Of a DNA stretch of 64,000 nt, positions 3,959-32,337 are shown in pieces. Below the pieces are notes generated by a model. It saw only the letters and a program-made list of their open reading frames with translations, made no database searches and was not told the DNA's origin. This stretch comes from Heteronotia binoei. Taxonomy: Eukaryota. The DNA lies in the NCBI RefSeq assembly GCF_032191835.1, contig NC_083223.1, positions 70,804,001 to 70,868,000 on the forward strand, written 5' to 3'. The translations under genes were made by a program, and so were the position numbers. Within the stretch, counting starts at the first letter, position 1. Each line of letters starts with the position of its first letter.

Positions 3959-5109
3959 AGTTGAGTGGGTTCCCATTGAGGTTTTATGATTTTACATAGA
4001 ATAGAGGCTTATTATGGGCCCTTAAATGGTTTTAGCTTTCTACAATAAATACATGTATGTTGATTTATGATTTTTTTACACTTTGTTTTTAATGTTCGGC
4101 CCTTTAATTGCATATTAACCTTTTAGGTTTCTTAGTACATCTGATTTGACCAAAATTCACCACTGGTCATTGTATTATAAAAATGGAACACACATACATA
4201 GACACACACACATCTTTTTCAGATGGAATGGTACATGCAGAGGATCCCCCACGCTATCTAGGACAGTTCCACCTCAAGATCAGCACTATTTCACTAAAGA
4301 TTACATAGGGAGAAACTGTCCATAGAGTTTGGACTACAAGCCTGAAGCATAAATAGTTTTATGTCCTAGATTTTTAAGAGTTTTTTTTTAAAAGATCAAT
4401 TCTTATGTTTAATTATGTTGAGAAATGTTTGCTTTGGTTAATATATCTCTGTCATTCCTAATTCTGCACTAGTCATTTTCTTAGATCCTGGCTGAGCTTA
4501 AAACCGGGTGTCCAACTGAATTACCTCATTAATCTGACATTTAAAACTGCAAGACGGCCATGCCTTGAGCTCATACTTAAATCACTACCACCATCTGGAG
4601 GCAGTACTATATAACAGCATCAATTTTGCACGCAGTTTCCTTTAATATGGCTGGAGTTAACTTTACATTTTTAACCTATGTGCACACTTGTGTGATGTGA
4701 TATACACACACAGAGTTCTTTATTTATTCATTTGATAGATTTATATTCCGCCCTTTCCATAATGGGCTGAGGGCGGACCACAGACATCAAACTATCAAAC
4801 TGTCTCAAGAACTAGCTAGGAATTTTTATTCAGAGCTCACATATTTACACTTGGTCCTTTCAATGATTATAAAAAAGTTCAGTCTCAAGTGAGTGTGCCT
4901 TCCCTGACAATTCAATGTACCAGTGAAAAAACACTGCCAGTGAGTTCACGTTAACAGTAATAGTTCTGTGCTAGACATATCTGTGCAGCATCCCAGAAAA
5001 TCAAAAGGGCTTTTCCTATTAATCTCCAAGTCACTCTTTGATGATATACAAACGTTTTATGTGAACAGATCAATATAATTCACTTTAAACAGTTCTGTAT
5101 CCCATAAGC

Positions 5110-5663: not shown

Positions 5664-7509
5664 CTCCTCATAGACATGCACACACAGGAGTGACAAACTT
5701 ACAGAAAGCCGGCTGCACAAAACAGCAAAATTCAGATCAGTGCAATCTCTTTGGAACTTCAATAGGATAAAACAGAATATATGTTCCAATTTATATCAAT
5801 AGAAGTTCTAAAACTTCAATGGATTACTAAAGAACTTGCAAAGAAGACCAGAGCAGAGAAATATAATTTTCATTGACCATTACTATTGCAATACAGACAT
5901 TATTAAGCATATTAATGATGAGATTATACAGGTCTGAGATTATCAGCCAACTAGGGAGTTAAAACATTTTACAACACGGTGTTGATTTAACGTAGCGTTG
6001 AGGTACTATTTAACCTGCTATATTTGATTAATAAAGCCAAGTTAATTTATGCATCAAAAATCAGCTTTTAAAGCCTAAGATGATCAGAAATACAGCAGAT
6101 GCTGGGGACATACCAGCAAGAGACAGATGTTGCCTTCAGGCCACCTGAAAGGTTTGTAGAAAAATCTGTGGTTGTGCACTGATAGATAGGAAAATGCATT
6201 AGAGAGGTCTTCAGTCTGGTTTATAGTAAGAACAGAAGAAAAACCTTACTAGTAACAGTGTCCTTGCTCAAGAGGGGAATGGGAGTAATATTTAGAATTT
6301 CAGAAAGTAACTCAACATTAGTCCAAGAAAGAGGCCCAAAGCAGTAAGCTTTTCAAGAGGCATAACTGCAGCATTTTTTTTTATTTCCCCAAGTTTTCTT
6401 TTTTTTAAAAAAGCAGGCAAAGCGCAGACAGGCAGCACTCTTGCCCTTCCTGGTTCCTCCCTATAATAAACATCAACCCATTTTTAAGGTCCCAACAGGC
6501 CATGTCAGATTTCCAAATCATTATCCTCACAACACTGATAAAATGCCTGCTAGAGAAGGTAAGCCAAAGCCCAAGTCACAAACAAGCAGGTATAGAAAGA
6601 CATGTAGTCCGGAATCAAAATGCGTTTTGTGCATTTTTTCAACCTCACTTTTTAGTGAAAATTTTAAATACTAATTCTAGTCACAGCTTCAATTCTCATT
6701 CTAGGACAGTTTTGGACTTTTCCAGGAGAGTTGGCAACTGGAAGTTTTTGTCTGCACCCAAAAACACTTCTTTAGTTCTCTCAAGGAGAGCTGGCAGCTG
6801 AAAAACTTCATCTGTACCAAAAAGGTTATTTAAAGTCTTCACTGTAAATATCAAGACTTGTATTTGAGTATCTATACTATTCTGGGGCAGACACTGAACT
6901 GCAACACTGTGGACTGTTTTTTTGCTTTTGTGATTCTTTACTGTTACATATGTACTGTGTCTTTAATTGCCATTGTGCTTGTTGTGCCTGGCTCTTGCCA
7001 TGAGCTGCTGAGAGTTTTGATTATATATGAATGCTTTTGGTGCAATTTTTGAAAGTATGAATACTTTATTGAATGGCTATATTTCCCCAGTGATTTTTTT
7101 TGTATTGGCTTCACACACTAGGAGACCCTCCCCCCTTTTGTTCACCTCCATGGTGGCCATGCCACCCCAACTCTCAGCTGGGCTTCATCTACCAGCCAGC
7201 TTTCCACAACGTAGCCCACCTCTCCAAATGAGTCTGCCTGCTCCGAGCCCCCATCCAGCTTTGGGTCAGCCTTAGCTCCCCAAGAGTGCAGCAGCCTAGT
7301 CAGGGCTGCTTGCCTAACTGTGAGGACAGCTGCTTCTTATGAGACGCCTGGCTGGGGTGCTATCTGGTCCTATCACCCACCATCCCCCATCAATAGCAAT
7401 GGCTGGAAATGTCTGCATCTTGAACAGAAACTGTCAAACTCAGTGCACAACTGCAATTTCAAAAAAGGCAAGTGCTATGCACAAGATAATTAGGAAGGAG
7501 ACTAAAACA

Positions 7510-8417
7510 AATCTTCCAGTATCATAACAGCCCTGTATAAATCCAAGGTACAGCCCTTTTGGAATACTGTGTACAGTTCCGGTCACTGCACCTAAAAAAA
7601 AAAAATCACAGCTTTCCAAAAGTTGCAGAAAAGGGCAACTAAAACAATTAAGGGGATGATGGAACACTTTCTCTACAAAGAAAGGTTAAAGAAGTTAGGG
7701 CTCTTTAGCTTGGAGAAACAATTAGTGAGGGGTGACATGATAGAGGTTAACAAAATCATCCATGGAATAGAGAAGGTAGAGATAAAAGTATTTTTCTCCC
7801 TTCCTCACAATACAAGAACTCGAAGGCCCTCCATGTAATTGATGAGCAGTAGGGTTAGAACAGATAGAAGGAAGTACTTCTTCACCCAGAGAATAAATAA
7901 CATGTGGAATTCACTGCTGCAGGAAGTGGTGACAGCTACAAGCACAGGCAGCTTCACTATGGGACTGGATAACCATACGGAGCAGAGGTCCATCAGAGGC
8001 TATTAGCCACTCTCTAAGTTGAGTTAACGTGAGCCAGCTCACAGATTTTTAGCCTCCAGCTCACACATTTTTGTCTTAGCTCAGGAAGGATGACCCCAGA
8101 GCACACTAATTTATGCAGTAGCTCACAACTTTAATGCTAGTAGTTCACAACTTTAATACCAGTAGCTCACAAAGTCATTTTTTTTCTCTCTCACAAGACT
8201 CTGCAGCTTAGAGGGAACATTGGATGGGATACTGTCTTGGCCAGTGATGCTTTGTATTCTTGGTGCTTTGGGGGCCACTGCGGGATGGCTTCTGGAGTTC
8301 TGGACCCACTGGTGGACCTCCTGATGACACCTAGGTTTTGGCCACCATGTGACACAGAGCATTAGACTGAATAGGCCACTGGCCTGATCCAGCATGGCTT
8401 CTCTTATGTTCTTATGA
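7510..8417 (+). mobile_element. 5'-truncated CR1 LINE 3' end
   Basis: ORF 7623-7838 (QKRATKTIKG...ERLKKLGLFSLEK...RGDMIEV) is a typical CR1 ORF2 C-terminus; ends in a CTTATGTTCTTATG tail. Confidence 0.85.
8011..8222. mobile_element. MITE nested in the CR1 3' region
   Basis: Right end GCAGCTTAGAGGGAACATTG; partial left end TCTCTAAGTTGAG; internal GCTCACAA repeats. Confidence 0.55.
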
Positions 8418-8760: not shown

Positions 8761-11700
8761 AAGCACTATTTTTCTATGAAGAGCAAACTGAGGCAGAGCG
8801 TTTTCAGGAATCAACACTGAAACTTCTAGACCAATGGAATTCGACTGGTATATGTGAAACAATAAGGAATGTGTTCAAAGTGCATATCCCTCCTATTCAC
8901 AACACCCCTTCCCTCCCCAGTTAAGGCATTTTTAAAATGCAGCTAGCAACTTCAATTTATTTAGGAATAATCCTGCTATTCTGCCTAAATGATGTACAGT
9001 TTGTGCTCCTGAAGTGAACAATGACTCAGGAAAGGTTATGCTGGAACTAATTTTGTTACTCATTAAGGTGCCACTGGTCTTCTCATTTATTTTGCCATCT
9101 AGATTAGCAGCTCAACACATGTACCTAGACATCCAACAGCATATTCTGAAGTCCCCTTCCATTAACCCAAGTTACAATATTAAGGCCTGCAGCAATCAGT
9201 GGGTGACTTGCAAGTTGTGACTATGTGATTTGCTTCACTCACCCAGGCCCAGCTGCTTGCTACTCTTCACTTACCAGCCACTCATGAGAACCATTGTGGT
9301 ACAATGGTTAGATTAAGTTCCCAGGCCCAGCCTGGCAACCAGCAGGAAATTGGAAAGCTGGAGAGCTGGGATATCCAGAGCAGCCATTGGCAAGACATTA
9401 CTTCTGAGAAAAATATGGAAGTGGCATCAGTCCTTTCTAGGAATATGGTGACTTCTAGAAAGGTAAATGGTCTCTTCCAGGTTTTCCCCAGAAGTAATGG
9501 CTCATTGCTGGTGGGGTTTTTTTTGTTGTTGTTATGTTTTCCTCCCACTGGAGTTGTAGAGAGCATTGCCCGCTAGAAATGCAGATCTGCCAGAAGAAGG
9601 AAAAGCTGAAGATGGGAGGTAAAGGTAGGTTGGCTTGTCAGTAGGAAGAAAAGAAGCAGGAAAAAAAAGAGGTTGTGTGAGCTTTCAAGAAAGAGAAAGA
9701 GGAAACAGTGGAGGAAGGGAAATGAGATTCCCTTGCAAGTCCTTTGCTTGTACATTACTATTATACAAATGTATGTACATACTATGTTGTGATTAAGAAA
9801 ATAAAAATTCTAAAGTGCTACTGAATTCCTATTAGTTTTTTGCGATTCTGTATTTTCTCAACGGATGCTTCAAGCAGTATCATTTGGGGGGGGGGGGGGG
9901 AGAGATGAAAAATCTTGAAGTTTAGAAAGACTCCTCATACTTAAAATGTCTGGGAACCATGACCTTACAGTTAGTTTTTTGCAGACTCTTGGCATCAGTA
10001 ATACAAAACATCTCACTGGAAATTACTCAGACCATACATTTCAGAGGCATTTCAGGCATCTGGGGGGGGGGGGGGGGGAGATCTAAAAACTTAACTGCAA
10101 CATGATACATTTTGCACAATCCTAATTAATGCCAAATGACAACATAACACACAAAGATGCTGACTCTTAAACAAGCATTCAGCAACAGCACACAAGTTTG
10201 ACATTTATGGGATATTAAATTCAATTCTTTCCTTTCCAGTCAAAGAAGCTCAGGAATCAGAAGTGAGCAAGATCTTCAGTTGAGATACTAGAGGCCTTGG
10301 CAGCAGGCAACACTGACAGTATTAGCCTTGATTAATCACCAATCCAGCTCTTTAAGGCAGGTCATTATATCTTCTACTGATTCAAGTTTCCCTAAAATTC
10401 CCTCACGGGCCACAGGATACACTCAACAATACAACATTAAGTAAAAAGAAAATATAAATGTTATTAACCAACATAAAGATCTAGAGAGCACAATGAACAG
10501 ATGCATACTTCACTTGCTACAATGTCTCTGAAACACATGATCACAAGTTTACTAGCCTTTTTTGTGGGAAAGGCTAAAAACAAGCTATTAACTTTCTCAT
10601 GTACAGTTTTCTAAAAGCTGCAGAAGCCAGCCACAAAGTCATCAGAACAAAACATTGGACTTACCTGAAAGTTTCTTCTCTTCAGTAAGGCAAAAACATT
10701 CAAATGTGTTTATGTCACATCTCCACTCACTACAGGCAGGGCTATGCAAATTTTTGTGCAACTTTCCTGGGGCGGAGTGAGAGTACCCTACCAGTCATCC
10801 AATTGCTTAGCTGCATTTCCACCTCTACTTTTATTTCTCTTCCCCAAACCTGCTAATAATTATATATTATCATTCTGGGGATGGTTGAGAAGTGGATGAC
10901 TTGCCCTTCAGGTAAATCCAATGTTTCAATCTCCTTCAGTGGGGGAAGTCCAAGCTGATTGTAGGTCAAAGCTAACTGACAGACTGGGAAAGTCTTAAAA
11001 AATCCCAACTTTTATAATTATCATCTCACCCCTCTACTTGCCATAACACTCTTACCCCAAAGGCTACCTCAACAGAGATCTGCTGTTCCATTCTATAATG
11101 CCTGACAAGGTTGAGAAGAATGACCCAGTAGTTGTTGTACGGATCTCATCCATGGGTGCTCTAGTGGAAAAGGCTGTTGAAGTAATCTCTGCCCCGGTAA
11201 AATGGGCCATAATGCCCTGTGGTGCCCATAAAGCCATGACTTCATAGGCTTTCTAGATGCAGAGTTTTACTCAAAGAGCAATAGTGGATTTTGACACCAT
11301 CCCCACACTGGCTGTATTATACAACACAAATAAATTATCAGATTGAGCCATGCTGTCCTGCTAATATGTGTATGCAGAAGGCCTGCAAATGTCATGTTTA
11401 TGTTAGGAATTTTTCTGACAAATGGAACAAATGAAGGCTCTGTCATGAGTTCTACAGAGTCCTTGTGGAACATACATAGCCCACTTCTAACTCATCAGGC
11501 CCTCAGTTCCAGTATTCTCTTGGCAGAGGTCACCATTATGAGGAAGGTGACCTTCCATAAGAGGAACTTCAGCTCTATGGACTTTAGTGGCTCGAAGGGC
11601 ATTTTGGTGAGTGTCTGTAAGATTCTAGATAGATTCCAGATAGGTAATCTATACCTCCCTGGGAGTGATAACTACATTATTCCCTTAAAGAATCTCCTAA

Positions 11701-17984: not shown

Positions 17985-18045
17985 TGTAATACGCATAGAG
18001 CACTGTATCTTCAATATGTCTTGTAACATTTGGATCAGCCCAGTC
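17985..18045 (-). CDS. LMBRD1: LMBRD1 exon 3 (61 bp; DWADPNVTRHIEDTVLYAYY + 1 nt)
   Basis: CTTTAG acceptor and GTGAGT donor; matches the recalled human DWANANVSRQIEDTVLYGYYT; phase 0 follows exon 2. Confidence 0.95.
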
Positions 18046-25652: not shown

Positions 25653-26136
25653 AATTATACCATTATTAAAAAAAAACCAGTCGAAGCATGAAAGGCAAGA
25701 GTGGAGGAAGAACATAAACAAGTTTTTTTTTTCAAAAAGGTATCACAGAAACCAATTTAGCTCTGATACTTTGCACAAGGAGACACAACACCCAATTAGA
25801 TTTGCATTTCTTATAAATTCCAAATTCCATAACTAACTTTGAAGTCATTTGTAGTTCATGCCCATATCAAGTCACGCCTTCATCACTTTGAGTAATGCTT
25901 TGTTCTGCAGTTCAGCAGGTTTTCTGCATGCATTCAAGTAATTGCAATGGGATCACAATTAACATTTTTATAAATGCAATAACAGCCCCATCATTATTCC
26001 ATTAAATGACTAAGTGTTGACTGCAAGTTTAAAACACAACACAAAGCAGAACAGAAATTACCGAATAAATCCAAGAACAGAAGATAATTTGGGGGGGAAA
26101 TTATATTAGCAGCAGCAGGGGATGATCAATACATAC

Positions 26137-26313
26137 CTTAAATGTCCCATTTTGATTCTTCACATAAGAAACTAGAAAAATATCCACTGGTAAGAGTGCT
26201 GATGTAATAAGTGCAATTGCCAAGGCAAAAATAGAGGTAATGGTAGAAATCACTTCACTTTCCCGTCTACTCTGGTATTTGCGAACATAAACCCAGCAGA
26301 AAGCCAGAATAAC
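26137..26313 (-). CDS. LMBRD1: LMBRD1 exon 2 (177 bp; VILAFCWVYVRKYQSRRESEVISTITSIFALAIALITSALLPVDIFLVSYVKNQNGTFK)
   Basis: TTGTTTTAG acceptor and AAG|GTATGT donor; near-identical to the recalled human LMBD1 residues 24-82. Confidence 0.97.
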
Positions 26314-27021
26314 CTAAAACAATACAAAAAAGTTACTGTAACCGAGTTCAAAGACGTCACAGTTTTGCTATGCTGAAATATGTACTCAGTCATGAAATGC
26401 TTCAGGTGTACCTAGCCAAGTCTGTATTTGGGCTCCATCAGTGAAGTGACAAGAGTAAGAACATTGCCTCTGAAATGACTGTAAGGATAAACCATTTGTA
26501 CAGAAAAAAATTAGAAATCAGGAGTCCTACTGTACACATATTTTGAGGGATGTTCCACTGGCATCAATGAAATTTTACTCCCACACATAATTACAGTCTT
26601 GAGAATAAGATCACATTCTCCTTAGCCATACTGTACTACTGCATTTTACAAATGGAATACTATCCAGGCCCTCAGTAAACAGAGGAAAGAGGGGAAGAAC
26701 TAGGACTCTGGCTTGGCTTCTCCATGCATGCCCTTGACCACTGTCGCCTCTGCAAAGGAGCCTACACTAGCTGTGACCATGCAAACAATATCTGTCAAGA
26801 CCTGAGCGGAAGTGCAGCATGATCCTATCAATGTGTATACCAACACCTGCAGTAAGCTCAACAGAGGGACAGATTTCCCATCTCTTTAATGTAAGCTGAA
26901 TGGCAAAGCTGAAATACGTACCTAAATCATGTCAACTGTTGCTTGAACCAAGAGACTATTTTTCTCAGATTAATTAAGGTAGAATAGGAGACACATATAG
27001 TATGTAAAAAAACTCAACACG

Positions 27022-27172
27022 GGCTGTGATCATACATGCCAAATAATGCACTTTCAATCCACTTTTAATGCACTTTCCAACTGGATGTTACTGTGTGAAC
27101 TGACAAAACCCAGTTTGAAAGTGAATTTAAAGTGGGTTGAAACTGCATTATTTAGCATGTGTGATTGCAGCC
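27022..27172. mobile_element. Palindromic Harbinger-like MITE
   Basis: GGCTGTGATCATACATGC / GCATGTGTGATTGCAGCC ends; 3-bp flanks ACG/ATG; related to 42739. Confidence 0.65.
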
Positions 27173-28235
27173 ATGGTAAAGCAAGTTGATCTATAAGACT
27201 TCCCCCTCTCCTCAACCTTGCACTCATTCATTGCTACAGTCCAGGCATGACATGCCCTAGATAAAATACAACACTATGATTTCATGCATGACTGAATGAC
27301 TTGGCTTGGGGAAGAAACCTGGTGGTTTTGAGGAATATTATATTCACGCAGTACTCTAAACACATGAGTGGGAAAGACAGAAATTGTTCCTGCTCCCAGG
27401 GATTTGTGGTACCTATTTCCACGGCAAACAAATGATTTGGCAGAATAGGACTGCAGGTGTGTGCTGAGGGCAGAATTATAATACTGCAGGCTGCCTGAAG
27501 CAAACCACGCCCTTTATGTGGTAAACAAGCATATCAGCCACAGGGTAGTAAGTCACAAAGGAGAGGTTTACCATACTGACCTCATATTTCATAACGAGTA
27601 ACACAGAGTTCAGTAGTCTCTTCTCTCCTACCGTTGCTATCCTCTGACTGAAAAGTGCAACAGGGCATAACCCTCTGCGGAATGCATCCTATACCCACTG
27701 CAAAGCGAGCAGCCGAAAAGGCAACCAAGTACTCTTCTGTTTTAAGGTGTCTTTAAAAAACAAAAGACAACCATGGTCCTGGGAAAACCGCTTCAGCCCA
27801 GTCTCTCTCCTGTCCCCAAATCCAACCCCTCTAAATTCAGCAGCACTTTCTACTGGAATGTATGTACGCTCGCGTGCGTGCGTTTTATAAACACATTTTG
27901 GAATTAGAGAAGCAAAATCCTACGTACCCTTACCAGGTAAGCCTACTGAACGCTGTATGACTTAGTCCCAAGTAAACAAGTACAAGAGTGGCCTCGCACG
28001 CGTGGGGATATATAAGTCTCGTTCCCCTCCTTTTAAAAACGAGGCTCCTTAAAAAGGAGGCACCCCGGGAGATTTACGTCCCTCCCCCCCGCAAGAACCC
28101 AAACTGGGGAAGCAACAGCGCCAGGGATGCGCAGAAAGCAGCGGAAGCGGAAATTAAGGGTGCGATTTGTAAAGTCCAGGCCGCAAAGCAGAAGAATAGA
28201 GAAAAGTCCCAATTATCTGCCCTCCGGTCTCCTAC

Positions 28236-28301
28236 CAGCAAAGCGATGCCGAACAGGCACCAGCCTGTGACTAGGTCAGACTCAGCAGTGAAGGCCACCA
28301 T
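28236..28301 (-). CDS. LMBRD1: LMBRD1 first coding exon, proximal copy 1a (MVAFTAESDLVTGWCLFGIALL)
   Basis: AAGATGG start, CTG|GTAGGA donor, 66 bp, phase 0; GWC.FG..LL matches LMBD1 TM1. Confidence 0.93.
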
Positions 28302-28560
28302 CTTAACTTCCGGCAACAAAGACAGCACAAAACGAAACGATGCTGCCGCCGAAGGGGAGGAGGAGCCAACTGGAGGCAGCGGGTCGACGGGAGAAAAAGG
28401 GCCAGCCTGAAAACCGTCACCAAGGAAACGGCTAAACAATATTCTACGCGCGAAGCTCCTAGGAGCGTTGCGATTGGCTGTTATTGCAGCATAGCCAGCC
28501 AATGAGCATCTCGTAGTGTTAGTTTGCTTAGCTGGGCTCTTTGCCGAGGGAATAAACGCA
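28302..28560 (-). promoter_or_regulatory. LMBRD1: TATA-less CpG-island promoter of exon 1a
   Basis: CpG-dense about 27850-28720; ETS CCGGAAGT (28306-28313) and YY1-like AAGATGG at the ATG; two CCAAT boxes (ATTGG 28473-28477, CCAAT 28499-28503). Confidence 0.75.
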
Positions 28561-29109
28561 GATTACAAAAGCTTTGTGCCACCGCTGGTTTCGGTTTAGT
28601 GAACTCCTTTAAAATAGCAATACTTGACATAAAGGGCAACAGGACGATCCTTTTCGCTTTTGGTGTCAGGAAGGAGGCTACAAAGTCTTGCTTTGGCTCT
28701 ATTCAAGATTAAAGTATCGTAGAAACCGAACATCATTCTTAGAAGCATTTGTTGGGGTTACTGTCACAACCCTTTACGTTAGTGAACGATGTCTAAATGG
28801 ATAGTTCTCCTTCCTTAAAGTGCGCTAATTAGACTAAAGGGATTAAAATTGCTTGTTGCTTCAATGGCAACGGCTTAACCCTGCGGAACTGCTCCGTTTA
28901 AAGATTTGCTCCACGCGCCCCAAAGTCTCCTCTTCGAGTTTAATAATGAATGACCGCCACCACACCCTAGTTTCATACCCAGCCCAGTGCACCCATAACC
29001 ACAGAGGATGGAAGACCGGGACCCAGTCATTTCTCAGAGTGGCAGGAAAAGAAACTGGCTAGAGAGCCAGCTGGCGGGAAGAGGAGAGTTAGTTGTTTCA
29101 GCCGCCTAC

Positions 29110-29175
29110 CAGCAAAGTAATACCAAAGAAGCACCAGCCAGTGATCGGGTCTGAGACAGCTGCTAACATCGTCAT
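29110..29175 (-). CDS. LMBRD1: LMBRD1 duplicated first coding exon, distal copy 1b (MTMLAAVSDPITGWCFFGITLL; optional 13-aa extension from ATG 29214)
   Basis: 66 bp, no indels or stops, CTG|GTAGGC donor, 13/22 aa and 45/66 nt identical to exon 1a. Confidence 0.8.
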
Positions 29176-29420
29176 AGCTTCCAGTTTCTGCGTTAACAGC
29201 TCCGCCGAAGCCATTTTTATAGATGAGACGGAGTATGATGGCGCATGTTCCCTTGCCTCTCAGCAATAAACATTGATTTCAGAGTCAGACTCAGCAGAGT
29301 GCTCACATGGCTGAATGGTTCTTCTAGCCAAAAAGAGCGCGTCAGAGAGAAACTATGCTAGCACTTCTCTCTCGCAGCATAGGCTAGGTTTGTACGTACA
29401 GGGCGCTTTTGATCTGGGAT
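29176..29420 (-). promoter_or_regulatory. LMBRD1: Candidate promoter of exon 1b
   Basis: Minus-strand TATAAAA at 29221-29215; YY1-like AAAATGGC; GCGCATG half-site near 29240; CTGGAAGC resembling the 1a ETS site; local CpG retention. Confidence 0.45.
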
Positions 29421-29890
29421 ATATCCCACCTGTGACCTACTGACCCTCATGGAATGCACCTGTCCTCCTTTAACAACGCCTAATTGTTTTTTTAAGCATG
29501 CTCAGTGAGTTCGGTAGAACCTGTTGTTTTCCTTTTACTCACTCTTCTCTAACTCCTATTTGTAGGCAAAGAAGGGTGGAAATTGAGATGAAGCTGGGAA
29601 TATACTAGGAGTACAATACCTTCAGGAAAACAAACTGGATTAGACAAGGAAGGTGGATGGTGTACATGACAGGATGTATTAAAATGGAATGATGGAATGC
29701 TTATTGGAAACTGTGGGTTATAATGGCAGCCAGGAATGCCAACTGACTTGCATGGGCTCCACTGGAATATACTATAGCACACTAAAGTTGCAGTGAAAAT
29801 GTGGGATGGATTTTGAAAAGCCTGTCCTGGGCCTAGAATGACAGACTCTGGGACCAGAATTAGTGCTCTGGGAGGACAATCCCCCCCCCC

Positions 29891-30023
29891 CAGGGGTCAT
29901 TTTGTAGGGAAAAACCTGCAGGAGCTCAGTAGCATATTCATTTGCATATACCCCAGGATCTGTGTATCAGACTGGAAGTTCAGGAGCTGGATTCTTGTGA
30001 GCTCCTGCTGATTTCAAGCCCTG
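29891..30023. mobile_element. hAT-like MITE
   Basis: CAGGGGTCATTTTGTAG left end (like 5480); right end TTCAAGCCCTG. Confidence 0.55.
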
Positions 30024-30221
30024 CAATCCCCAGGGAGAAATGACAGCTCTGGGAGTGGAATCAGAATTCTAGGGCAGCAACTAGCTATACGTCCCCTTCC
30101 TCTAATTCCAACTGACCACTGTTCGGAAGAGAGAACCCTCCTGACTACCGCCTCTCCAGAGAGAACACTTCCCCCTATCTAGCTTGGCCTTTCATTTCCT
30201 TCCTTCCAGGTCCCATTCCAG

Positions 30222-30495
30222 GAGAGCCAGTTTGGTGTAGTGATTAAGTGTGCAGACTCTTATCTGAGAGAACCAGGTGGGAGAACCCACTCCTCCATTT
30301 GCACCTGCTGGAATGGCCTTGGGTCAGCCATAGCTCTGGCAGAAGTTGTCCTTGAAAGGGCAGCTGCTGTGAGAGTCCTCTCAGCCCCCCCCCCCCACCT
30401 CACAGGGTGTTTGTTGTGGGGGAGGAAGATAAAGGAGATTGTGAGACACTCTGAGTGGAGGGTGGAATATAAATCCAATGTCATCGTCTTCTTCT
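30222..30495 (+). mobile_element. Squam3-like SINE
   Basis: GAGAGCCAGTTTGGTGTAGTG head; ATATAAATCCAATGTCATCGTCTTCTTC tail. Confidence 0.85.
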
Positions 30496-30649
30496 CTGGT
30501 CTCCACTGGGCAAGTTCAAAACTGCTGCCCACTCAATCAGGGAGATAGAAGGGATTGTGGGAAATGTACGCCCTGTAACTACTCTGATATAGGCTTCCCT
30601 GGAGCCTGTAGGCCTCATTAGGCCTAGGATCATGATACTCAGGCACAAT

Positions 30650-31292
30650 TAGGGTTGCCAAATCCAATCCCAGAAATATCTGGGGACTTTGGGGGTGGAG
30701 CCAGGAGACACTGGGGTGGAGCTAGGGGGAGGGGGGGAAACGGCGCCGGGGAGCATGGCGAGCCACCCCGTCTCAGAGCGGGCGACGCCGCTGCGCAGCT
30801 GCCGCCTCTTCTCCGCTCGCCGTGGCTGCTCCTCTGAGATGGGCTCAGGCTGAGCCCTTCTCGGAGGAGCAGCTGCAGTGGGGCGGGGGGGCGGCAGCAG
30901 CGCGGCGGCCTCGCCCGCTCTGCTCCGCCTCTGGGGTGAAATCGGAGGGGGGGTGCAGGCGGGCCGGGGGCGTGGCGAGCCACGAGTCCAGGTCCTAGAA
31001 GGGCCCGGATTCGCGGCTCGCCATGCTCCTGGCCTGTCTCCGCCCTCCCCTTCTCTGGTTTTGCCTGCGCTGCTGCTGCCTCTTGGCTGCTCCTCCAAGA
31101 TGGGCTCAGTCTAAGCCCATCTCGGAGGAGCAGCTGCGGTGGGTGGGGAGGGGGCGGCAGCGGCGCAGCGGCCTCACCCGCTCCAGGATAGGGCAGCTCG
31201 CCATGCTCCCCTGCTTCCGTTTTTTTGGGGAGCGGGGGAAGAGGGTGGAAATCCTGGGGTCCCCCGCCAGGGCAGGAGGGTTGGGAAGCCTA
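30650..31292 (+). mobile_element. Non-autonomous hAT element with GC-rich palindromic interior
   Basis: TAGGGTTGCC...GGGAAGCCTA ends; perfect 8-bp TSD GGCACAAT. Confidence 0.9.
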
Positions 31293-31569
31293 GGCACAAT
31301 ACGTTTTAGAATGATGGCGGTATTGTCCTATACAGAGTAATTCCAGCCTAAACCCACTGAAATGATGTACTTTTCTGTAGTAATTCTTCCTAGGGTTGCA
31401 CAGTAGATTTATCAAAGCAGGTAATTCAACAGATGCCTATTTTGTCACTGCTGTACAACAAACTGCACCTGTTGAAAATCCCTCATCCCACTTAACTATT
31501 TACAGTGCAGAAGCACTATTCTTCTTTGCATCTGGTCATTCTACCACATTTTCTTGCCATATATCCTGG

Positions 31570-32337
31570 TAGGCTTCCCAATCCCCAGGTCCTAGTGGGG
31601 GATCCCCTGTTTTTAAAGGCTTCTCCCTGCCCCCAGCCAGCTGGCCAGTGGGGGAAGCCCCACCCCCCACAATTACCATGTAGTTTTAGAGCTCCTGCAG
31701 GTCCGTTTTTAAAATATGTGCCTTTAAGGTTGAGCAAGAAGCAGGAAACAGGAAGGGCTTTGGAGAACGGCCCCTCCCTTTCTTTTGCTTTCAGTTTTCA
31801 GAGCAAGTAAAGTTCTGTAGGAACAAGACCCAGTATGTATTTGTGTGTGAGAGAGAGGGCGGGGGCAGGGGATTCCCTGGTTTGGAGGCCCTCCCCCGCT
31901 TTAGGAAGCGTGCTGGGGGGAGGGAAATGTCTACTGGGCACTCTATTATTTCCTATGGAGAACGTTTCCCATAGGGAATAATGGGGAATTGATCCGCGGG
32001 TATTGGGGGCTCTGGGGGGGGCAATGTTTTGAGGTAGAGGCACCAAATTTTTAGTTTAGCATCTAGTGCCTCTCCCCAAAATACCCCCCAAGTTTCAAAA
32101 CGATTGGACCAGGGGGTCCAATTCTATGAGCCCCAAAAGATGGTGCCCCTATTCTTCATTATTTCCTATGGAAGAAAGGCATTTAAAAAGGTGTGCTGTC
32201 CCTTTAAATGTGATGGCCAGAACTCCCTTGGAGTTCAATTATGCTTGTCACACCCTTGTTCTTGGCTCCACCCCAATGTCTCCTGGCTCCACCCCCAAAG
32301 TCTTCAGATATTTCTTGAATTGGACTTGGCAACCCTA
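31570..32337 (-). mobile_element. Non-autonomous hAT element, same family
   Basis: TAGGCTTCCC...GGCAACCCTA ends; TSD TATCCTGG/TATCCAGG. Confidence 0.9.

Follow-up and report, generated by a model that had tools for sequence, protein, structure and literature searches.

Tandemly duplicated first coding exons that each have their own promoter, carry a splice donor only and are used in a mutually exclusive manner by promoter choice are well known from the UGT1A locus and the clustered protocadherins. As in those systems, where variable first exons encode the N-terminal part of the protein and are spliced to common exons, the LMBRD1 gene of the gecko Heteronotia binoei has two first exons, 1a and 1b, upstream of a common exon 2. 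Unlike them, LMBRD1 has just two such exons of 22 codons each, which encode half a transmembrane (TM) helix and no ligand-binding domain and form no array. The locus lies in a stretch of 64,000 nucleotides (nt) of the H. binoei genome (contig NC_083223.1, positions 70,804,001 to 70,868,000), here called the window, to which all coordinates refer unless another locus is named. In human LMBRD1 the boundary between exons 1 and 2 is the same, after ...GLLLL, and so is exon 2. The difference is that only one type of exon 1 occurs in the listed proteins of mammals, birds, turtles and tuatara; for mammals this agrees with the initial annotation of the window, which gave only one such exon for human. 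The human N-terminal variant NESI is a truncation without about 73 residues and involves no exon swap.

The two first exons, their donors and the exon that they share are the following.

28236..28301, minus strand: coding part of exon 1a, the proximal conserved first exon, 22 codons, MVAFTAESDLVTGWCLFGIALL (translation)
28230..28235, minus strand: splice donor of exon 1a, GTAGGA (sequence; RNA joint GT..AG)
29110..29175, minus strand: coding part of exon 1b, the distal alternative first exon of LMBRD1, 22 codons, MTMLAAVSDPITGWCFFGITLL (translation; homology to 1a)
29104..29109, minus strand: splice donor of exon 1b, GTAGGC (sequence; species comparison)
26137..26313, minus strand: exon 2 (59 codons), acceptor exon shared by 1a and 1b (RNA contig; LMBD1 match)

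Exons 1a and 1b are homologous, alternative first coding exons of LMBRD1. Each is 66 nt long, starts with ATG and ends in phase 0 at a GTAGG donor, with the reading frame continuing into exon 2, which starts at 26313 after ttttag and whose peptide (VILAFCWVYVRKYQ / VILAFCWVYVRKYQSRRESEV...) is LMBD1 sequence. Exon 1b lies 874 nt upstream of 1a, and the introns to exon 2 measure 1922 nt from 1a and 2796 nt from 1b. Since both exons have a donor only and join exon 2 in phase 0, a transcript can contain one or the other. Identity between the two is 45/66 nt and 13/22 residues, with synonymous differences at five conserved positions (S8, T12, F17, G18 and I19). The coordinates, lengths, donors, phase, introns, identities and synonymous sites reported by the initial annotation were all reproduced. 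Orthology of the gene is clear: exon 2 is 83-98% identical to LMBD1 proteins and 98% identical to exon 2 of Gekko kuhli, the search matches carry PF04791 (LMBR1-like), and the LMBD1 chains in PDB were matched at E = 0. Exon 4 of LMBRD1 is not within the window.

When the 1a peptide was used as query in a six-frame scan of the whole window, 1b scored 71 (BLOSUM62) and no other site reached 30, whereas the best scores in 200 shuffled windows averaged 25.7 ± 3.9 with a maximum of 39. A score so far above the shuffled windows indicates true homology. The 1a and 1b regions are each single-copy in the 2.63-Gb genome, and the DNA search found no further 1a/1b-like copies elsewhere in it. Beyond the exons, the alignable flank is limited to about 12 nt before the ATG plus the donor GTAGG: in this species the upstream flanks scored 13 against a null of 10.2 ± 1.4, and the downstream flanks 10 against 10.4 ± 1.3. 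The initial claim that the sequence after the two donors is unalignable agrees with these scores. The 1b donor is GTAGGC in three geckos and GTAGGT in Rhineura, Pogona and Lacerta, and the block TTGCTG followed by GTAGGCGGC at this donor is identical in the window and G. kuhli; the 1a donor GTAGGA is also found in turtle and in most squamates. Exon 1b of the window has none of the marks of a pseudo-exon (loss of ATG, frameshift, stop or loss of donor), and the copy is intact.

Both exons are represented in public gene models. The N-terminus of H. binoei RefSeq isoform X2 (XP_060091490.1) is exon 1a of the window, and isoform X1 (XP_060091481.1) consists of MASAELLTQKLEA followed by exon 1b as residues 14-35. 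Exons 2 and 3 of the window are identical to both isoforms, which differ only in exon 1. Exon 3 is placed as follows.

17985..18045, minus strand: exon 3, DWADPNVTRHIEDTVLYAYY + 1 nt, equal to residues 95-114 of H. binoei X1

The exon 1a peptide is identical to the N-terminus of Paroedura picta. Full-length squamate proteins were found by a profile search (alignment, first row 320 aa), and isoforms were taken from cluster listings; a search with a fish LMBD1 query gave only fish among the matches listed, and one with a G. kuhli fragment gave only short fragments and a partial protein of Varanus. In the models of six other squamates we found 1b-type N-termini.

Lacerta agilis X2: MEMFTIVSDPTARWCFSVALL (21 codons)
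Salvator merianae (UniProt entry): MAMFTAVSDLTAGWCFFSVALL
Rhineura floridana X2/X5: MAMFSAVSDVTAGWFFFSVALV
Hemicordylus capensis X2: MAVLVVASDLTLGRCLFSSALL
Pogona vitticeps X2: MAVFPPVSDVATDRYFFSGTLL
Sceloporus undulatus X2: MAVFGSMSDMTAGWSFFGGVLL

As in H. binoei, these models have an ATG-initiated first exon of 22 codons (21 in Lacerta) in place of exon 1, and where the DNA was fetched this exon lies about 1 kb upstream of 1a, with a TATA box and a GTAGGT donor. They differ in being strongly diverged (50-60% identity to gecko 1b), several of them without the GWC motif, and they are automatic models. All other sauropsid and mammalian proteins listed, including those of snakes, Anolis, Varanus, tuatara, turtles and birds, have a single exon-1 type; both tuatara isoforms in UniProt are 1a-type. 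In the literature we found no paper describing 1b isoforms or combining LMBRD1 with 'alternative first exon'. The initial annotation had allowed that the pair would be real and not novel if it were annotated already across vertebrates; it is modelled in H. binoei and at least six other squamates. The exon pair is therefore real but already known, being present in the public annotation of H. binoei and other species, and the reading given by the initial annotation is in essence correct.

The same model sets hold further variants. Hemicordylus X3 has a third kind of first exon (MTQCGAYSR) spliced to exon 2, and the Rhineura models X4 and X5 skip exon 2 in frame, starting from either 1a or 1b. 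LMBRD1 of G. kuhli is split over at least two faulty GenBank models flagged UNVERIFIED_CONTAM, one of which (146 aa) reads through the intron between exon 1a and exon 2. The intact 1b exons of Eublepharis and G. kuhli are without representation in the protein models seen.

The LMBRD1 loci of nine other species were fetched, five with an intact 1b and four without. In the five species with the exon, it lies 0.6-1.2 kb upstream of 1a.

Gekko kuhli (locus L003): 1b at 8798-8863, intact, 22 codons, donor GTAGGC; 1a at 10001
Eublepharis macularius (locus L009): 1b at 7384-7449, intact, unannotated, MALLAAVSNPATGWYLFGAALL, donor GTAGGC; 1a at 8001
Rhineura (locus L008): 1b at 6001; 1a at 7038
Pogona (locus L012): 1b at 8001; 1a at 8927
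Lacerta (locus L013): 1b at 8001; 1a at 8998

In Paroedura picta (L007:5435-5604) the distance between the flanking anchors is 169 nt and not 573. Relative to the window, about 350 nt are deleted, among them the TATA box and exon 1b, and the anchors and exon 1a are conserved. Thamnophis elegans (L010:7292-7400) has a relic in which the 1b promoter, leader and exon have decayed; it lies about 640 nt upstream of 1a. The promoter and leader of this relic align to Rhineura with a score of 19.5 against a null of 12.3 ± 1.5 (maximum 18); the relic has another sequence in place of the ATG, lacks part of the exon and runs into a TAA stop after ...AGWCIF. No 1b was detectable within 8 kb upstream of 1a in Anolis (L011), and in the green turtle (L006), which has a single exon 1, no second exon 1 was found within 10 kb. 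Counted by lineage, nine have an intact 1b and three have lost it.

In a maximum-likelihood tree of sixteen exon sequences, the six 1b exons formed one clade (ultrafast bootstrap, UFBoot, 91), with the geckos apart from the rest. Squamate 1a and 1b have in common traits that are absent in tuatara, turtles and birds, namely the length of 22 codons, F/L4 and D9, and these shared features point to one duplication on the squamate stem. Geckos are sister to the other squamates, from which they split on the order of 200 million years ago. The duplication would thus predate crown squamates, having occurred before geckos split off. The proposal of an old duplication was in this way borne out by 1b orthologues at the same place in five squamate loci and by their clade. 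Independent duplications in geckos and in other squamates were also considered; they fitted worse by 12 log-likelihood units, and the approximately unbiased (AU) test gave p = 0.055, which is no formal rejection.

To judge from motifs, 1a and 1b each have their own putative promoter, with the following elements.

29214..29221, minus strand: TATA box TATAAAAA of the putative 1b promoter, 46 nt before the 1b ATG (sequence only)
29176..29214, minus strand: in-frame upstream ATG plus 13 codons, MASAELLTQKLEA, the start of RefSeq X1 (residues 1-13)
28306..28313, minus strand: CCGGAAGT, ETS-type motif directly upstream of the 1a ATG (factor assigned from the motif only)
28473..28503, minus strand: CCAAT-box motifs of the putative 1a promoter, ATTGG at 28503-28499 and CCAAT at 28477-28473 (sequence)

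In each of the six species for which 1b DNA is available, a block of the form TCTATAWAWRYGGC precedes the 1b ATG by 46-55 nt, and the leader from this block to the ATG can be aligned across squamates. No TATA box was found for 1a, whose promoter is TATA-less. G. kuhli, with CCACT as the second box, and Paroedura share its CCAAT block, and the block GCCGGAAGTKAAG immediately followed by ATG is present in 10 of the 10 sauropsid 1a loci compared, turtle included; the counterpart of this block at 1b is a decayed copy, CTGGAAGC. When the 90 nt upstream of 1a and 1b were aligned within species, promoter homology was non-significant in all six species (P 0.07-0.76). Against the 1b profile, the exon-1 promoter of the turtle can be aligned from its TTTAAATAG onward and squamate 1a only from about -12, which we take as a hint only. 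Thus, of the exon-plus-promoter duplication proposed at the outset, the exon and about 12 nt of flank stand, and promoter homology beyond that could not be demonstrated.

H. binoei RefSeq X1 differs from the conserved unit, the 22-codon exon 1b, in starting 13 codons upstream, at 29214. The A of this upstream ATG is the last A of the TATA box. In G. kuhli it reads ACG and is accompanied by a frame-breaking 5-nt indel, and in Rhineura and Lacerta the upstream ATGGC is followed by an in-frame TAG. The 13-residue extension of X1 is probably an annotation artefact, outside the conserved coding sequence. Further upstream, about 1.5 kb from exon 1b, the interval 30600-31200 is CpG-island-like (GC 0.68-0.71) and contains a GC-rich palindrome (30937-31063). 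An Rfam scan of 29300-31600 gave only sub-threshold matches to microRNA families, on both strands of this palindrome. A neighbouring gene transcribed divergently may have its promoter in the CpG-island-like stretch.

RNA data came from a single run (run X1; Logan contigs, 132 M letters), which holds 5-6% of the words of the region and was the only match in two RNA searches (26100-29400 and 28200-29300). A contig of 1924 nt, with zero mismatches, joins 28338-28236 to exon 2 and skips 1922 nt, and the ends of this 1a-to-exon-2 joint are GT..AG on the minus strand. The contig also defines the leader of the 1a transcript.

28302..28338, minus strand: 5' untranslated region of the 1a transcript (37 nt), as far as the RNA contig extends (the contig covers 28234-28338; its end is not a mapped transcription start)

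Of the two junctions proposed for checking, 28236 to 26313 was therefore seen in this run and 29110 to 26313 was not; the only source for the joint of 1b to exon 2 is the public gene models. As for the initial proposal of two mutually exclusive isoforms, both are in RefSeq and the 1a joint is in RNA, but the 1b joint was not seen. In the same run, the interval 30226-30455 of the window is a repeat in which the summed contig depth climbs to about 460,000 and rearranged joints are numerous. Its loose-end consensus (GGGAGAACCGGGTTTGATTC...) resembles a short interspersed nuclear element derived from tRNA, and Paroedura has two copies like it upstream of LMBRD1 (L007:2630-2791 and 4069-4288).

Selection was analysed with the Goldman-Yang (GY) codon model on a fixed species tree of six taxa. 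Omega was about 0.10 for 1a and about 0.55-0.6 for 1b, and for 1a omega = 1 was rejected with 2dlnL = 32. Between the window and G. kuhli, exon 1a differs at 9/66 nt (7 synonymous, 2 non-synonymous) and exon 1b at 12/66 nt (6 synonymous, 6 non-synonymous); in the introns, 13.6% of aligned columns differ, with 0.116 indel events per substitution. S8, D9, F17 and L21 hardly vary across nine 1b peptides, and geckos and tegu have V7 and F16 in common. We then simulated neutral evolution with the estimated branch lengths and the indel-to-substitution ratio of 0.116, scoring a copy as intact if it kept the ATG, the frame, no stop and the GT. An intact 1b in at least five of the six species was obtained in 0 of 20,000 runs (single-tip probability 1-15%), a test biased by the fact that three of the six species were picked since they were annotated as intact. 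Where 1b is not maintained it decays, as in Thamnophis (ATG lost, in-frame stop) and Paroedura (deletion). Retention of the ATG, frame and donor of 1b is far beyond the neutral expectation.

We consider it probable, and the best explanation of these data, that transcription of LMBRD1 here starts at either of two alternative sites, each followed by a first coding exon of its own. The proximal promoter, which lacks a TATA box and has CCAAT and ETS motifs, would give the canonical, highly conserved N-terminus encoded by 1a; the distal promoter, with its conserved TATA box, would give the diverged 22-residue N-terminus encoded by 1b, that is, the luminal tail and the first half of TM1. Exon 1b would go back to a tandem duplication on the squamate stem that copied exon 1 and at least the sequence immediately 5' of it, and would since then have stayed open, spliceable and ATG-initiated in most lineages under relaxed constraint, being lost in some. 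We infer that 1b is transcribed in H. binoei, that its promoter functions and that the two isoforms may differ in function. Several observations weigh against this explanation. The interval 28956-29337, which includes 1b, has no coverage in the RNA run, whose contigs show presence and not absence. Alternative variants in RefSeq and Ensembl need transcript support, but the evidence behind these models was unseen by us. For 1b, 2dlnL against omega = 1 is 2.9-3.1, which does not reject neutrality, and its divergence from G. kuhli is no lower than that of the introns (13.6% mismatches). The GWC motif, invariant in the family, is broken in the 1b of Pogona, Hemicordylus, Sceloporus, Rhineura and Eublepharis, and the exon was lost independently in three lineages (Thamnophis, Anolis and Paroedura). 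With an omega of about 0.55-0.6 that the test does not separate from 1, the residues of 1b are under weak constraint, and selection is visible mainly as retention of the ATG, frame and donor. For the purifying selection claimed initially, this retention speaks in favour, and the failure to reject neutrality and the several losses speak against.

What the 1b peptide would add to a two-start arrangement can be read in two ways. It is possible, though we hold it only tentatively, that the 1b protein, driven by the TATA promoter and kept since crown squamates, has a distinct role, for example as a tissue- or stage-specific LMBD1 or through differing insertion, luminal tail or partners. It is rather unlikely, in our estimate, that 1b was kept purely for regulation, as a second TATA-driven start, with equivalent proteins whose coding differences are near-neutral drift. 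The 1b peptide would then need to be nothing more than an ATG-initiated hydrophobic half-helix, and the difference from the best explanation would concern protein function alone. An omega of about 0.55 that is indistinguishable from 1, the degraded GWC in several lineages, the repeated loss of 1b while the LMBRD1 gene stays and the fact that the TATA block and 5' leader are the most conserved non-coding feature are all consistent with this reading, as is the position of TM1 outside the ABCD4 interfaces; the near invariance of S8, D9, F17 and L21 in nine 1b peptides, and V7 and F16 shared by geckos and tegu, argue against it. We regard it as improbable that 1b is an unused, slowly decaying relic in H. 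binoei and that RefSeq X1 derives from homology or ab initio extension. The lack of RNA coverage over 1b and its divergence from G. kuhli at about the intron rate would fit a relic, and the start of X1 at 29214, a non-conserved ATG inside the TATA block, resembles an automatic extension of the open reading frame. However, this gecko and two others long separated from it have kept the ATG, the 22-codon frame, the donor and the TATA box intact, 1b isoforms have been modelled in seven species by independent pipelines, and Thamnophis and Paroedura show how disuse looks. Nothing was found in favour of a chance likeness of 1b to exon 1, or of 1b being part of another gene or repeat, and this can practically be dismissed: the score of 71 against a shuffled maximum of 39, two single-copy regions and synteny in five other squamates speak against it, and the peptide score and synteny refute it.

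Returning to two transcription starts with alternative first exons, a 2026 cryo-electron microscopy study places the ABCD4 contacts of LMBD1 in TM4, the TM7-TM8 strands and the cytosolic bundle (PMC13434180; PDB 24vc and relatives). As these contacts are away from TM1, the exon swap is unlikely to alter ABCD4 binding. Most likely it affects the time and place of LMBD1 production, and perhaps also the luminal tail or how the protein is inserted in the membrane.

Alternative first exons produced by tandem duplication are a familiar architecture, and the general importance of this case is limited. What is added here is that the pair is squamate-wide and old, and that 1b, with its conserved TATA block, has been lost at least three times. 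For annotation, the extension of X1 is probably spurious, 1b of Eublepharis and G. kuhli is unannotated, and the Thamnophis copy is a relic. Exon 1b is about five times less constrained than 1a, and its losses are a natural experiment on the variability of the N-terminal tail and the first half of TM1 of LMBD1; that TM1 tolerates variation agrees with its position outside the interface in the 2026 ABCD4-LMBD1 structures. The two-exon arrangement more likely serves regulation, through the choice of promoter. If a distinct role of 1b were true, squamates would have their own, lineage-specific form of a lysosomal escort for cobalamin that is deeply conserved.

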